From Auanema rhodensis (taxonomy: Eukaryota > Animalia > Nematoda): 64,000 nucleotides of DNA. Positions 4,301-62,955 of the stretch are shown here, in pieces (position 1 is the stretch's first letter; every line of letters begins with the position of its first letter). The notes under the pieces are model-generated. The model saw only the letters and a list, made by a program, of their open reading frames with translations. It was not told where the DNA came from and did no database searches. The DNA lies in contig OZ059899.1 of NCBI GenBank assembly GCA_964057225.1, forward strand, positions 14,446,001 through 14,510,000, given 5' to 3'. Both the position numbers and the translations under genes were made by a program.

Positions 4301-6443
4301 CTCGACTAAGCAGAGATCACACATACACAACATGGGCTCATCTGAACGTTTTGTGCACCGGTCCAGCTATTATACAACTCTGGATTCCTTTTTCTTTCTT
4401 TCTCCCTCTCCCTCTCTCTCTCACTCTTTCTCTCTCTCTTTCTGTTTCTCTCTACCTCTATTTATCTGACAATTTAAAATGAAACAACGTTGGTTTGGAA
4501 ATTCCGAGAAATTGTGGCAAGACAAGCGTAAAAAAGCTTGTTTCTTAGCACAAATTCTACTTATCGCTTTCATACTTTCAATTTTTCGGATGATTGTAGT
4601 CCTTTCCAGCTACTTCTGGTGGGTATTCTATTCTCAGTATTTCCACTGAATGATAATGATGAAGACGACGGCAATATTCACTTTTGATGTTTCTTATTCA
4701 TTCATTGCTGTCCTTTTCATTGCCTCAACTCATTTCTTCGAACTCAATTTTCTAATGGAATTACCAAAAAAATTGAATTAAAGACATTTCTCTATTGCCC
4801 TTCTCCGCTTGTTTCTGCTCTTTCGGTCTAATCAAGCTTTGCTTTTATCATAATGCTCGATAGCATCATTATCAGAATCAACTTCGTTGTTGTGGCTGTT
4901 TCTCAGTCCATGGTACTATAGTATATTCCTCATCATTCTACTGTTATCTGATGATCTTTATATTTCAAATATATATATATATAGAAATTGATATTCATTC
5001 CTCATAACAACTTTTATTTTGAAAATTTACATCATCATTTCCGTCAGCTTTTCCTTCTTTTCTTAGCCTTTTTCTCGTTTTCAGTTTTTTTCCAATGACA
5101 TTTCTTAGAAAATCAATTTGTTCATGATACAACTCAAGCTGCTTCAAATCTCAATATGATATTTCAGTCTAATTCGCCAGTCGGAGAAGATTCCTTGGTA
5201 ACAGTTAGAATGCGACCTGATTTGCACGGACGTTTCGGATTTAACGTAAAGGTTAGTGAAGTCTATAACATCCTCATCTTCTGCTTCATCATCATTATTT
5301 CGTTAACAACAAGAACAACAACAATAAACAACAACAATAAACAACAAACAAATTTTGTTTGTAATGTCTGTTCTCTCATTCTCTACTCTTCACTTTCTTT
5401 ATCTCTTTGTTTCTCTTAACTTTTCTCTATATCTAACTCTCTTTAACAGTAGATTACATTTTTTTTTCTGCAACACTCTAGCATTCTCACTTTCTACTCT
5501 TATTCTTTTCTCTTCCCCACTCAATCTATTTCTCTTTTTCTCATCTCATCCTTCCTTCTTTCCTACTATTTCATACTCTTATTATGGCATTCTATTCAGG
5601 GCGGTGCTGATCAGAATTTCCCGGTTGTTGTATCTCGTGTTGCTCCAGACAGTGCAGCTGATAAGTGTCATCCACGACTTAACGAAGGAGATCAGGTAAT
5701 ATATTGTATATTTCAATTTTTTTTGTTTTTGTCATCGACAATACAGTTGAAAATCTTGTTGACAAATTTCTATTCTTGCAATTAATTGTCACATAATCCA
5801 GTAACTATGTAATTTTGGTTAATATTATATGATATAGTAAAAAGAAATATATTCTTATTCTCTGCTTTGCTTTCAGGTAATCCTGATCAATGGTCGTGAC
5901 GTGGCCAACATGGCCCACAATGAGGTTGTCAACTTCATTCGCAAATTCCGAGATGTTTCTGGTGGAGCAGAACTTGTACTTACTATCAAGCCTAACGGTA
6001 ATTTCACACTCAATCTCATATCATCTCCATAACTATGCCTATTTTCAGTTTATCGCCTGGGAGATGAGCTAGATGAGCCTGAAGTCAGCAATTATCCAGA
6101 ATCTGCACGTGTAGCTGAGAGTGTTCCAAGAAGTGATAAGCTATCACACTCTCTTCGTTTGCTCGGGGAAGCTTTGGCAAGCGGCAAAGTTGTACAGCAA
6201 TTTGAGGTACGGATCGGCATATGTAGAAGATTAAATCTTCCGTGCTTCCCTTCTTCCTTCTTTTACAATAATTTGCATTTTTAGCAATTATATCGCAAAA
6301 AGGGTGGAATGACAATGAATGATTGTAGACTTCCACAAAATATTAATAAGAATAGGTTTGTACTGTTTTTGTTATTTTCAAAGTTTTTATTAATTAACGT
6401 ATAGTAAGGATAGATTACTGTAAATGTGCTCTCCACCCCTCTC

Positions 6444-59227: not shown

Positions 59228-59881
59228 AAATACGTGTTAAACAATTGTATATATTGATAGCAAAGGATACAAACTTGCTGAAATGATTAAAATTTAATAA
59301 AAATATTTTTTATTTTCAGTTTATCGCAAATAGCGATTTATCTGTTTCATAGGCACATAAATATATCACTTTTTATTCAGCCTGTGACGTCATCATTCAT
59401 TTAATTTCTCGTTCGAATTTTTTTTTTTCAGTGAAACGGCTGAACAGAACGGTTGCATTCGAAAACTCCATTATCATTCTCTTATTTCATGATAGCTGTT
59501 TTTTTTTGTAACAAAGGGGTATGAAGTACAAGAGTGACCTAGGGATAGTTTGCGCTCTGTAGCTAATTTTCTTATCGTAATAAAGGTCGGGGTACGAATT
59601 TTGATGTCCCAACACGAACTACCGTAGTCTTTTTGGCACGCCTTTCATTTTTGGCAGGCCTAAACGTTTCTTTTAACTCTCGCGGGTATATTTCTTGAAT
59701 TTGATTTTGATTCTGAAGATTACTGTGATTGGAGAAGCAATCTGAATGGTTCTCTAATTGATTGATTTGTATTTGTGGCTCTTGCCTGGTCACCCAAGGG
59801 TGCTATTCATTTTCAAATCAGGTTGGTTTTTTCTTTCTAGCTATTTTCTTATTATGTATTATTAGCCTGCATATTTTCGAC

Positions 59882-60507
59882 ATGTGTGATAACTGGGGAA
59901 GTGGTTCAGACTTTTTTGGGTCTCAGAAGACCCTCAGTGAGCTTGTTGATGGATTGTCAACCAAGAAAACGGAGGTACAATTCTTTTTTGGCTTCAATGT
60001 TCTAATTGTTTCTCTTCTAGATAACTGAAGTGGATACGTTTCCTCTAGCTCCATCTCAAGCAGATAATATCGGTGTTCAAGTAGTGCCATGTGTAATGTC
60101 ATCTAAGCATAGCGCTCCAAAAATCTTGAAGAAAAAGAGTACTATCAACAAGATTAACAAAGAGCCTAATCTGAAAAAGGTTACTTTCGAGGTTTGTAGC
60201 TTTTTCCCATTGCAATCTTATTCTGATTATTTGTAGGTAGAACAACTTCTTGCTCGAGAAAGTGTTGGTGCTGACAAAGAAGAAATTCGTGATCGTCTTG
60301 TGGTAATTTTTTTTTGTTTTGTTTTGTTTTATTTTCATTTTTTTATAGTTATCTCTTGGAGGCTTAGCATCTAAGGGTAAATCTATTAACTACAAGAAGT
60401 TCCGAGAGGAAAGAATCTTACAAAAAGCTGCAGCGAAAGCTGAAGCTTTGAACATTCACCAAATTCCTAATAAGGTGATTATGAAGAAGAAGCCTAAGAA
60501 AAAGTAG
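59882..60507 (+). CDS. DUF4602/C1orf131-like small-subunit processome factor
   Basis: Four exons. KVTFEVEQL...DRLVLSLGGLASKGKSINYKKFREER resembles C1orf131 ARLEVHRF...AIMLGAKPPKKSYVNYKVL. Lys-rich tail. Confidence 0.65.
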
Positions 60508-60726
60508 TTTTCTTATAGCTGGTTCTTTTTTTGTTTTTTTTTTGTCACGCTGGCGTGTAAATAAACGAGGAATAGGTTTCCTTTGTTTTAATTTGTACAG
60601 TTGCACTAATATGCTATAGATAATAAATCTTTTTTGTTTAAAATTATCCATGTTTCTCTTTCTGGTCTTGTACCTGACATATCTTTACCAAATATTGAAA
60701 CACAATGTATAACCTTTATGTCTAGA

Positions 60727-62079
60727 ATGCCTCGTTCTCGTTCAGTGAGCAGATCTCGAAGCCCATCTGTGGATAATAAGGTCGGTTTTGCTTCTTTTTC
60801 TTTGCGTTCGCGGTGGTTGTGTGTGCGTACTTGGCCCTTTAATTTTGACATTGCACACGATATACATATCAGATATGAATGATAATCGGATCAAGAACAA
60901 GACCTTTATTCTGACAAGAAAGAACAAGAAAGAAAATGGAGAAGATTATAACAGAAGACTTTAAACATAGAGAAGATTTTTAAGAAGTACAAGAATTCAC
61001 ATCGTTGGATATTTCAAGATCCCTATGTGAGACGGTGAGTGGCGTCTTCGCCACAGTAGTTGTCCTCTATTCTGGGGATTTTTAGGATGAAATTTAAAAT
61101 TGTTTCATTGCAATCTTTGAAAGTTACTGCTTTAGGGCCGAAACTCAGCCTCTCGTTCTCGCTCTCGAAGTAGATCAGCTTCTGTGTCGGCCAGACGAGA
61201 CCGGTCTCGTTCTCGATCTCGTTCGCCCTACAGATCTCCGTAAGTTTGATTTTTTGTTCGCAACTTTATTAAAAGTAACTTTTAGACCAAGAAGAAATAG
61301 GCGCAGCAGATCCCGCTCTCCCCGTTATCGTGGTGGAGGGGGTGGAAGAAAAGGAGGCGCATGGGCTTCAAATCGTAATAGAGAAAATCCAGATCCAAAC
61401 AAGTAAGCTTCTTCGTTTCTTAAAAACTTAAGCTGTTGTTTTTGCGTGTTCCAGTTGTGTTGGTATCTTCAATTTAAGTGTATATACAACAGAGAAAGAC
61501 TTACGCGACGTCTTTGGGAAATATGGAGAGATAGAAAAGGTTAGACCATAACTGATAAATGTTGTTATAACTATAAGTTTTTTTTACAGTGCGAGTTGGT
61601 CTATGACCATCCTACAGGACGTTCTCGTGGATTTGGGTTTATATATTTTGAGAGATTGGAGGATGCTACTGCTGCCAGGGATACATTGAACGGGACGGAA
61701 GTAGATGGGCAAAAGGTAACTTGGTCTATGAATATGAATTTATATTTTATTTCTTCAGATTCGTGTTGATTACTCTATCACTAGAAGAGCCCATACTCCT
61801 ACTCCAGGACAGTACATGGGCAGCTCCAGGGGAAGAAGACGAGAGTACGGTGATCACCGGTATACTATTAATCATATAATTTCACATAAAAATAATTTCT
61901 TTAGTGGTAAGCGTGATTCGTATAGAGATGGCTATAAGGATTCATATAGAAGAAGAAGCCCATCGCCACGTCGCAGGTAATTTTTCTTCTGTTTATAATA
62001 TTTTAACATAACAAACTTCAGCAGACGTTCTCCTTCTCCGAGATATGACCGCAGACGTAGCCGCTCCCGTTCATATTAA
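60727..62079 (+). CDS. rsp-8: Transformer-2 family SR splicing factor
   Basis: RS1-RRM-RS2 layout with [33 protein letters not shown] and [21 protein letters not shown], ending RSRSRSY*. Confidence 0.96.
60873..61034 (+). other. Candidate poison (PTC) cassette exon in rsp-8 intron 1
   Basis: ATCAG acceptor, strong ACG/GTGAGT donor, in-frame ATA-TGA stop at codon 2, and about ten AGAA motifs. Confidence 0.75.
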
Positions 62080-62220: not shown

Positions 62221-62955
62221 TCATGTATTCGGTAATTTCCTGTACACTTCGATGAAAATTTCTGGAACTCCTGTCTCCTGCTCTTGTTCCATCTTCAATA
62301 GTTTTCTTCTGTACTTCTCCTGTCGTTGCCAAATAAGGTCTCTGAATTGGATCATTAAAAGAAATGGAAAAGATCCCTACCTTCTTAACATAGCTTTTTC
62401 TTCACGTTCCAACTTTTCGTGCCGTTTTATATATAGATCAGAGCTTGTTTTTTCCTCGCAATGTTTTGTTCCACGCAGGGGGCATAGAGGTTCCATCTAA
62501 AACAAATCCGAAAAAGTCAGAGAAAAATGATTATGTCATACGATCCGAAACTTCGGCACTTGTACTTCTTCATGTTTCACCACCAAATCGGGATTTTCAA
62601 ACATTATCTCAAAATAAAATCGCGATTATTAATGGTTATAATTAAAAACCTTATTCGGGCAAATAGTGTGTTCCACTGATGTGTCAACGTTTTCCTTTTG
62701 AGAAGGTGATTTGTTGTTACTTCGAAGAGGACGCATAATTTTATTCTGTAAAGTACAAGTAAATGTTGGGAAGAAAGTTATGAAAACAACCTCAGATTTG
62801 AGTCCACACCCTTGATTAGGAGAGTTGAATGCTTCCAAAACACCTTTCGTTGTAGTTAATTTGCCTTTTTTATGCTGTCTGGTTTTTTTGTCATTTTCTT
62901 TGATTATCCTATTTTCTTCTATTTTTTTAACTTTTTTTCTGCGACCTAGTGGCAT
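62221..62955 (-). CDS. PEHE-domain protein, MSL1-like (187 aa)
   Basis: Exons 62791-62955, 62650-62745, 62542-62607, 62381-62496 and 62221-62341 total 564 nt in frame. VQVPKFR...EEKTSSDLYIKRHEKLEREEKAMLRRDLIWQRQEKYRRKL carries the P-E-H-E signature. Confidence 0.8.

Follow-up and report, generated by a model that had tools for sequence, protein, structure and literature searches.

Within the window, the 64,000-nt stretch of Auanema rhodensis DNA analyzed here, a plus-strand gene carries an AGAA-rich element in its first intron (Table 1). All introns of the eight-exon gene model run from GT to AG, the reading frame is consistent across the exons, and 7/7 junctions are present in spliced RNA contigs. 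Intron 1 (60781-61135) is 355 nt long, whereas introns 2 to 7 measure 46, 52, 50, 43, 45 and 45 nt, respectively. An AG acceptor directly precedes the initiation codon of exon 1 and is likely a trans-splice site.

Table 1. Features of the rsp-8 locus in window coordinates, and FSAF1-family genes in loci fetched from other nematodes (L-numbers)
Feature	Position	Strand	Remarks
Tra2/RSP-8 orthologue	60727..62079	+	8 exons, 238 codons plus stop, RS1-RRM-RS2
Exon 1	60727..60780	+	18 codons, phase 0; 3' end AAG/GTCGGT
Proximal (productive) 5' splice site GTCGGT	60781..60786	+	C at +3 and G at +4 are unusual
5' part of intron 1	60781..60872	+	contiguous with exon 1 and element in RNA contigs
Conserved block upstream of element	60823..60872	+	ends in candidate CAG acceptor 60870-60872
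AGAA/CAAGR-rich element	60873..61034	+	162 nt, 10 AGAA, 6 CAAGR, all frames stopped
Premature stops	60876..60882	+	TGA 60876-60878 if read as a cassette; TGA 60880-60882 in read-through from exon 1
Distal 5' splice site GTGAGT	61035..61040	+	contig ends and conservation
Six-pair hairpin GUGGCG/loop/CGCCAC	61039..61054	+	overlaps +5/+6 of distal donor
Distal intron	61035..61135	+	101 nt; spliced out in the non-productive isoform
Exon 2 (RS1 region)	61136..61239	+	
FSAF1-family gene, JU1783	L001 2174-2792		
FSAF1-family gene, P. pacificus	L002 1325-2078		
FSAF1-family gene, C. angaria	L004 645-1527		
FSAF1-family gene, A. viteae	L008 958-2091		
FSAF1-family gene, C. brenneri	L009 1243-1888		

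The product of this gene has the layout that the Tra2 family demands, in which RS-rich exons 1-3 and 7-8 flank one central RRM (exons 4-5), and Pfam RRM_1 was detected in exon 4 (E = 2.9e-5) and exon 5 (E = 1.4e-11). For the protein searches, single exons and database proteins were used as queries. An exhaustive search with exon 5 returned single-RRM nematode proteins with 73-86% identity, one of which is the annotated rsp-8 of Pristionchus pacificus, a protein whose own relatives are transformer-2 homologues across animals. The nearest protein overall belongs to Auanema sp. JU1783 (P0156). Alignment to rat Tra2-beta and nematode RSP-8 displayed the Tra2-type RNP2 (Gly at position 2, Phe at position 4), an aromatic RNP1 and the C-terminal extension RVD-SIT-R-HTPTPG-YMG, in accordance with the features that define the RRM of the family (PMC3045587). 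Exon 6 had no match among solved structures, and an NCBIfam scan yielded generic RRM families and nothing more specific. Judged from its RRM_1 domain, its RS-RRM-RS layout, the alignment and its closest relatives, the gene is a Tra2/RSP-8 orthologue, which agrees with its original designation as rsp-8.

The upstream same-strand neighbor of rsp-8 belongs to the FSAF1 family (PF15375) in five fetched loci (Table 1). For the upstream gene of the window (60000-60726 region), the N-terminal portion of a fused Heterorhabditis model (P0154) has matches in ORFs at 59762-60236, and about 220 nt separate the end of the gene from the rsp-8 ATG. Because of this gap of about 220 nt and the AG acceptor directly before the ATG, the two genes probably form an operon. 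FSAF1 and rsp-8 are fused in database proteins from Heterorhabditis (P0154) and from filarial species (P0177, P0182, P0194). On the downstream side, a 39-nt intron of a minus-strand gene (window 62342-62380, minus strand) was confirmed by RNA contigs. In A. viteae, the downstream minus-strand neighbor is a PEHE-domain gene (L008 6054-7312), so the neighborhood is conserved on this side too.

The original prediction, drawn from the bare sequence, had described a first intron of about 355 nt among others of about 45 nt, containing a 162-nt stretch at 60873-61034 with CAG before it and GTGAGT after it, an immediate in-frame TGA and about ten AGAA motifs; every one of these features was recovered, with AGAA counted exactly 10 times. 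Exon 1 joined to position 60873 reads ATA TGA, so the stop is the second codon of the element. The AGAA density of the element is the plus-strand maximum of the window: a count of 10 was reached in 0.1% of 162-nt plus-strand segments, every one of them at the element, and in 5 of 100,000 composition-matched shuffles (P = 5e-5). The six CAAGR motifs are likewise the window maximum on either strand, and none of 20,000 shuffles contained six. The sole other site with 10 AGAA per 162 nt lies on the minus strand at 5350-5572; read on the plus strand, it is TTCT-rich and intron-like, and it adjoins an ORF with a PDZ-like piece. All ATGs inside the element run into stops before exon 2, and the only later Met codon in the main frame lies past the RRM. 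The candidate acceptor at 60872 is not preceded by the U-run of the nematode consensus.

Scanning 60500-61300 against Rfam identified no family, and the segment from exon 1 through exon 2 folded no better than shuffled sequences (z = 0.7). A two-sequence consensus fold with JU1783 contained small local hairpins only and no real covariation. The stem of the hairpin at 61039-61054 is identical in JU1783 and its loop varies in length and sequence, again with no covariation. That this hairpin, which overlaps the distal donor, might render the donor activator-dependent is only a suggestion from the predicted fold.

We compared the window gene with the orthologous locus of JU1783 (L001). Identity was 93% for the block upstream of the element (60823-60872) and 89% for the element itself (60873-61034). 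Pooled over 60823-61034, it was 90%, compared with 73% for the exons (Fisher test, p = 2e-7) and 54% for introns 2 to 7 (p = 5e-18); single values ranged from 51 to 82% among the eight exons and from 47 to 59% among introns 2 to 7. In other words, the intron element is the best-conserved portion of the gene, ahead of the coding exons. All 10 AGAA, the six CAAGR, the CAG and both stops are kept in JU1783, and the distal donor GTGAGT is identical, while the proximal donor is GTATGT there versus GTCGGT here. Conservation fades past about 61075. These identities indicate that purifying selection acts strongly on the AGAA-rich element.

RNA evidence was taken from the contigs of four public runs (X1 to X4), which all belong to one study and whose record is itself silent on RNA; since their contigs show 7/7 productive junctions, the runs are RNA. 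The joint between exon 1 and exon 2 (60780/61136) was observed in run X1. Beside the mRNA contig, a second, gapless contig was present in all four runs, extending from 60752 (X2 to X4) or 60787 (X1) to 61035, and its 3' end fell exactly at 61035 in 4/4 runs. The contig of exon 2 started at 61135 in X3 and X4. No RNA contig of any of the four runs covered positions 61036-61133, and introns 2 to 7 were likewise uncovered by RNA contigs in the four runs. The k-mer depth of the non-productive contig was 23-41% of that of the mRNA contig, which is a rough value because contig depth is a poor measure.

We modeled the k = 31 graph for alternative sets of isoforms and compared the predicted contig boundaries with those observed. 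With productive and unspliced RNA only, the model yielded a 412-letter contig and an exon 2 contig starting from 61134. When a read-through form joining 61034 to 61136 was included, it yielded a 284-letter contig (60752-61035) and an exon 2 contig starting from 61135, as observed. The observed boundaries were reproduced only by the set in which the 61034-to-61136 junction was combined with the productive form and trace amounts of unspliced RNA. This gives indirect but specific support for use of the distal donor, as we infer the 61034-to-61136 junction from the contig boundaries. What the contigs document as non-productive RNA is an exon 1 that runs on for 254 nt to the distal donor and has its stop at 60880-60882.

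Three other readings were rejected. Genomic DNA or bulk pre-mRNA would not leave introns 2 to 7 and 61036-61133 without contigs, and the extra contig is accordingly neither of these. A short polyadenylated transcript ending at 61035 was dismissed as no loose A-run follows the contig end. A truncated protein isoform was also rejected, there being no suitable ATG: because the ATGs of the element are never read into exon 2, the non-productive RNA cannot make the protein.

Of the two junctions predicted for a poison cassette in intron 1, the one from 61034 to 61136 is consistent with the contig end at 61035 in 4/4 runs and is required by the graph model. The other, from 60780 to 60873, was not seen; it would break the contig at 60871, yet the contig is continuous across this site in all four runs. 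Support thus extends to a stop-carrying RNA that uses the GTGAGT donor but does not reach the acceptor of a discrete exon, the segment being read through from exon 1 in these runs.

We searched for similar elements in other nematodes, with C. remanei and C. brenneri standing in for C. elegans, whose RSP-8 was not among the matches listed. As a baseline, at least 9 AGAA per 160 nt occur at about 0.2% of window positions. In five species, the sense-strand AGAA maximum of the fetched locus sits in or beside the 5' end of rsp-8. This maximum was 9 per 160 nt in C. angaria (in intron 1), 12 in C. remanei (in its true intron 1), 13 in C. brenneri, 10 in P. pacificus, but 260-370 nt upstream of the ATG, and 9 in Necator, where the start-codon exon follows about 400 nt downstream. 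In a Mesorhabditis paralogue, the AGAA-rich stretch occupies a different intron, one within the RRM. The fetched locus of Toxocara contained no AGAA-dense stretch, and that of A. viteae contained one only 3' of the gene.

A block within intron 1 is conserved between C. remanei and C. brenneri; it measures 158 and 152 nt and contains 11 and 12 AGAA, respectively, is 71-72% purine and has a stop as its seventh codon. Between these two species, the first 100 nt of intron 1 and intron 2 are not conserved. Sizes are alike in Auanema and Caenorhabditis, with 16-18 codons in exon 1, 329-361 nt in intron 1 and 152-162 nt in the block. No CAAGR is present in the Caenorhabditis blocks, and the elements of the two genera are unalignable beyond their composition and the short motif ATGAATGA. 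This motif contains two TGA that are out of frame with each other. It comes after the candidate acceptor and occupies 60875-60882 in the window, 2329-2336 in the C. remanei locus (L003) and about 2659-2667 in the C. angaria locus (L004). Other nematode rsp-8 genes thus offer a partial counterpart of the predicted cassette, C. remanei and C. brenneri each having a comparable AGAA-rich block with an early stop in their first intron; in P. pacificus, Necator and Mesorhabditis, however, the stretch is displaced.

Several gene models in these regions deserve comment. In the C. remanei locus (L003 2148-2548), the start assigned to database protein P0271 is the ATG at 2501, which lies inside intron 1, and the true exon 1 (MGPRSPSHSRSPSRSRG) is at 2148-2198. 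Odd N-termini are found in the strongylid rsp-8 models of Necator (P0158), A. caninum (P0155) and Cooperia (P0161). In the Necator locus (L005 595-1300), positions 595-700 are AGAA-rich and are located about 400 nt upstream of the exon encoding MSRTLSRS, and the Cooperia model begins in the 3' end of this stretch. The Mesorhabditis spiculigera paralogue (P0284; L006 3046-3197) has a long AGAA-rich intron within the RRM-coding region, with a GACG/GTATGAG site similar to the Auanema distal donor. In P. pacificus, the AGAA/GAA-rich stretch (L002 2628-2745) is found downstream of the FSAF1 gene and ahead of the start codon of rsp-8, and the long intron 2 (about 330 nt; L002 3192-3522) is not AGAA-rich.

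We propose, at a probability of roughly 60%, that intron 1 of rsp-8 is an unproductive-splicing switch built around the AGAA/CAAGR element, through which RSP-8 limits itself. Two 5' splice sites compete for the acceptor at 61135, namely the poor GTCGGT at 60781 and the consensus-like GTGAGT at 61035. Use of the proximal site gives the coding mRNA, and use of the distal donor adds 254 bases that carry the stop at 60880-60882. Were the CAG at 60872 used as well, 162 bases would be added and the stop would be that at 60876-60878. RSP-8 itself would bind the AGAA/CAAGR repeats. From sites immediately 5' of the distal donor, the bound protein would activate that donor; as these sites also lie within the productive intron, it would at the same time interfere with productive splicing. 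Excess RSP-8 may in this way divert its own pre-mRNA to a dead-end form, which would be removed by nonsense-mediated decay (NMD) or kept in the nucleus. Feedback by RSP-8 itself is our inference. Counting against a self-limiting switch, a depth of 23-41% is high for an efficient NMD target. Also counting against it, the Caenorhabditis blocks lack CAAGR and are unalignable to the Auanema element beyond the features given above, and the AGAA stretch is displaced in P. pacificus, Necator and Mesorhabditis.

Previous studies provide a context for this proposal. Among the direct NMD substrates of C. elegans, rsp-8 is placed in Class I, with a log2 change of +1.37 in NMD mutants and enrichment with SMG-2 (PMC5765348), and a review places rsp-8 with TRA2A and fly Tra2 among the splicing factors having conserved alternative splicing coupled to NMD (PMC8652244). 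Unproductive splicing has also been reported for the C. elegans SR genes rsp-2, rsp-4, rsp-6 and rsp-7 (PMC5765348, PMC8652244, PMC13247117). In the literature that we searched, the cis element of rsp-8, its motif content and its conservation are undescribed.

The form of the non-productive RNA could differ from that proposed above. The 162-nt segment could be a discrete cassette, with the read-through RNA as a partly spliced nuclear intermediate and the cassette mRNA kept low by NMD. Retention of the CAG acceptor and the following stop in JU1783 is consistent with such a cassette, as is the Caenorhabditis block, which starts after a conserved acceptor TCTGCAG, ends before a conserved GTCAT and, at 152-158 nt, is near the 162/154 nt found in Auanema. 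However, the unbroken contig at 60871 in the four runs argues against any appreciable 60780-to-60873 junction, and the acceptor lacks the nematode-consensus U-run. We accordingly regard the discrete cassette as possible but doubtful.

The identity of the reader was considered from the RNA-contacting residues. The AGAA-reading residues of human Tra2-beta were determined by Tsuda et al. (PMC3045587). R111, F123, V150, F163, Y165, R190, D192, I195, T196 and R198 of Tra2-beta are identical in the Auanema protein; S148, R187 and R188 are altered to E, Q and K, respectively; and G124, F193 and K197 show conservative changes or make main-chain contacts with RNA. Binding of AGAA/GAA by the Auanema RSP-8 is thus plausible, to the extent that conserved residues predict it. 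Purine-rich GAA/AGAA enhancers are generic targets, which other SR proteins also bind. This generic binding, together with the three changed residues S148, R187 and R188, counts against RSP-8 as the reader and leaves room for a real unproductive-splicing switch that other SR proteins read, in cross-regulation or developmental control; SR genes are indeed known to cross-regulate one another's unproductive splicing (PMC4379411). Nevertheless, the motif is the specific AGAA core of the Tra2 RRM, whose base-specific contacts are conserved, CAAGR is the motif by which fly Tra2 acts on its own transcript, and the same family regulates itself in both flies and vertebrates. Reading by other SR proteins therefore seems unlikely compared with reading by RSP-8 itself.

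A slowly spliced or detained intron segment without feedback, conserved on account of, for example, a DNA-level enhancer or an unrecognized RNA, would fit the abundance of read-through RNA at the contig level and the extension of conservation 50 nt upstream and 40 nt downstream of the element, but it is highly unlikely given that the RNA boundary falls exactly at a consensus donor in 4/4 runs, that the conserved part consists of strand-asymmetric purine repeats with a known RNA-binding motif, with no Rfam match and no exceptional folding (z = 0.7), and that the C. elegans orthologue is a direct NMD substrate.

The proposed self-limiting switch can be compared with two known systems of the same family. 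In vertebrates, Tra2-beta activates an ultraconserved, AGAA-rich poison exon in its own gene (PMC3240583, PMC11791180); this is exon 2 of TRA2B according to Stoilov 2004, as that work is cited in PMC3240583. As in vertebrate TRA2B and TRA2A, an alternative stop-rich segment follows a short first coding exon in Auanema, is dense in AGAA/GAA and conserved above the coding sequence, and gives an mRNA without full-length protein. In contrast to the separate cassette of vertebrates, the RNA observed here is exon 1 extended through a distal donor. The comparison concerns layout and motifs rather than sequence, and conservation has been shown here within nematode genera.

In Drosophila, Tra2 blocks removal of the M1 intron of its own transcript through five CAAGR repeats, and the same element placed in an exon activates splicing (PMC3245930); retention of the M1 intron has also been described elsewhere (PMC1669769). 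The Auanema gene resembles this system in that CAAGR repeats (six in this case) occur in the regulated intron and intron sequence is retained, and the rule that the motif represses from an intron and activates from an exon would fit both effects proposed for Auanema. Unlike the M1 case, retention is limited to the 5' 254 nt of the intron and involves a second donor, and the Caenorhabditis blocks lack CAAGR. Furthermore, in contrast to fly Tra2-179, no truncated protein is made from a downstream ATG in Auanema. The C. elegans SR genes are similar in phylum and gene class, and their stop-carrying isoforms also hold intron sequence; rsp-8 is only a gene-level list entry in that literature, to which Auanema adds a cis element. 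The Auanema architecture combines features of intron retention in flies and of the poison exon in vertebrates and would thus lie between both forms, and Auanema rsp-8 would represent a new nematode case among the known circuits of Tra2 self-regulation.

Tra2 is a textbook example of a self-limiting splicing activator, acting through a poison exon in vertebrates and through intron retention in flies. It is conceivable, although somewhat unlikely, that self-limitation of Tra2 via its own motifs after a short first coding exon is ancestral to bilaterians. If this is the case, the nematode element, the CAAGR silencer of flies and the poison exon of vertebrates would be diverged versions of one circuit, and the nematode form, with its retained intron piece and second donor, would be a preserved intermediate architecture. 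A third phylum with the same logic, the same intron and both types of motif would make the choice between common origin and repeated invention directly testable. For C. elegans research, it would supply a defined cis element to account for the presence of rsp-8 on the list of NMD substrates. More generally, the results show that nematode introns can carry segments conserved above their neighboring exons, a counterpart of the ultraconserved poison exons of vertebrates.
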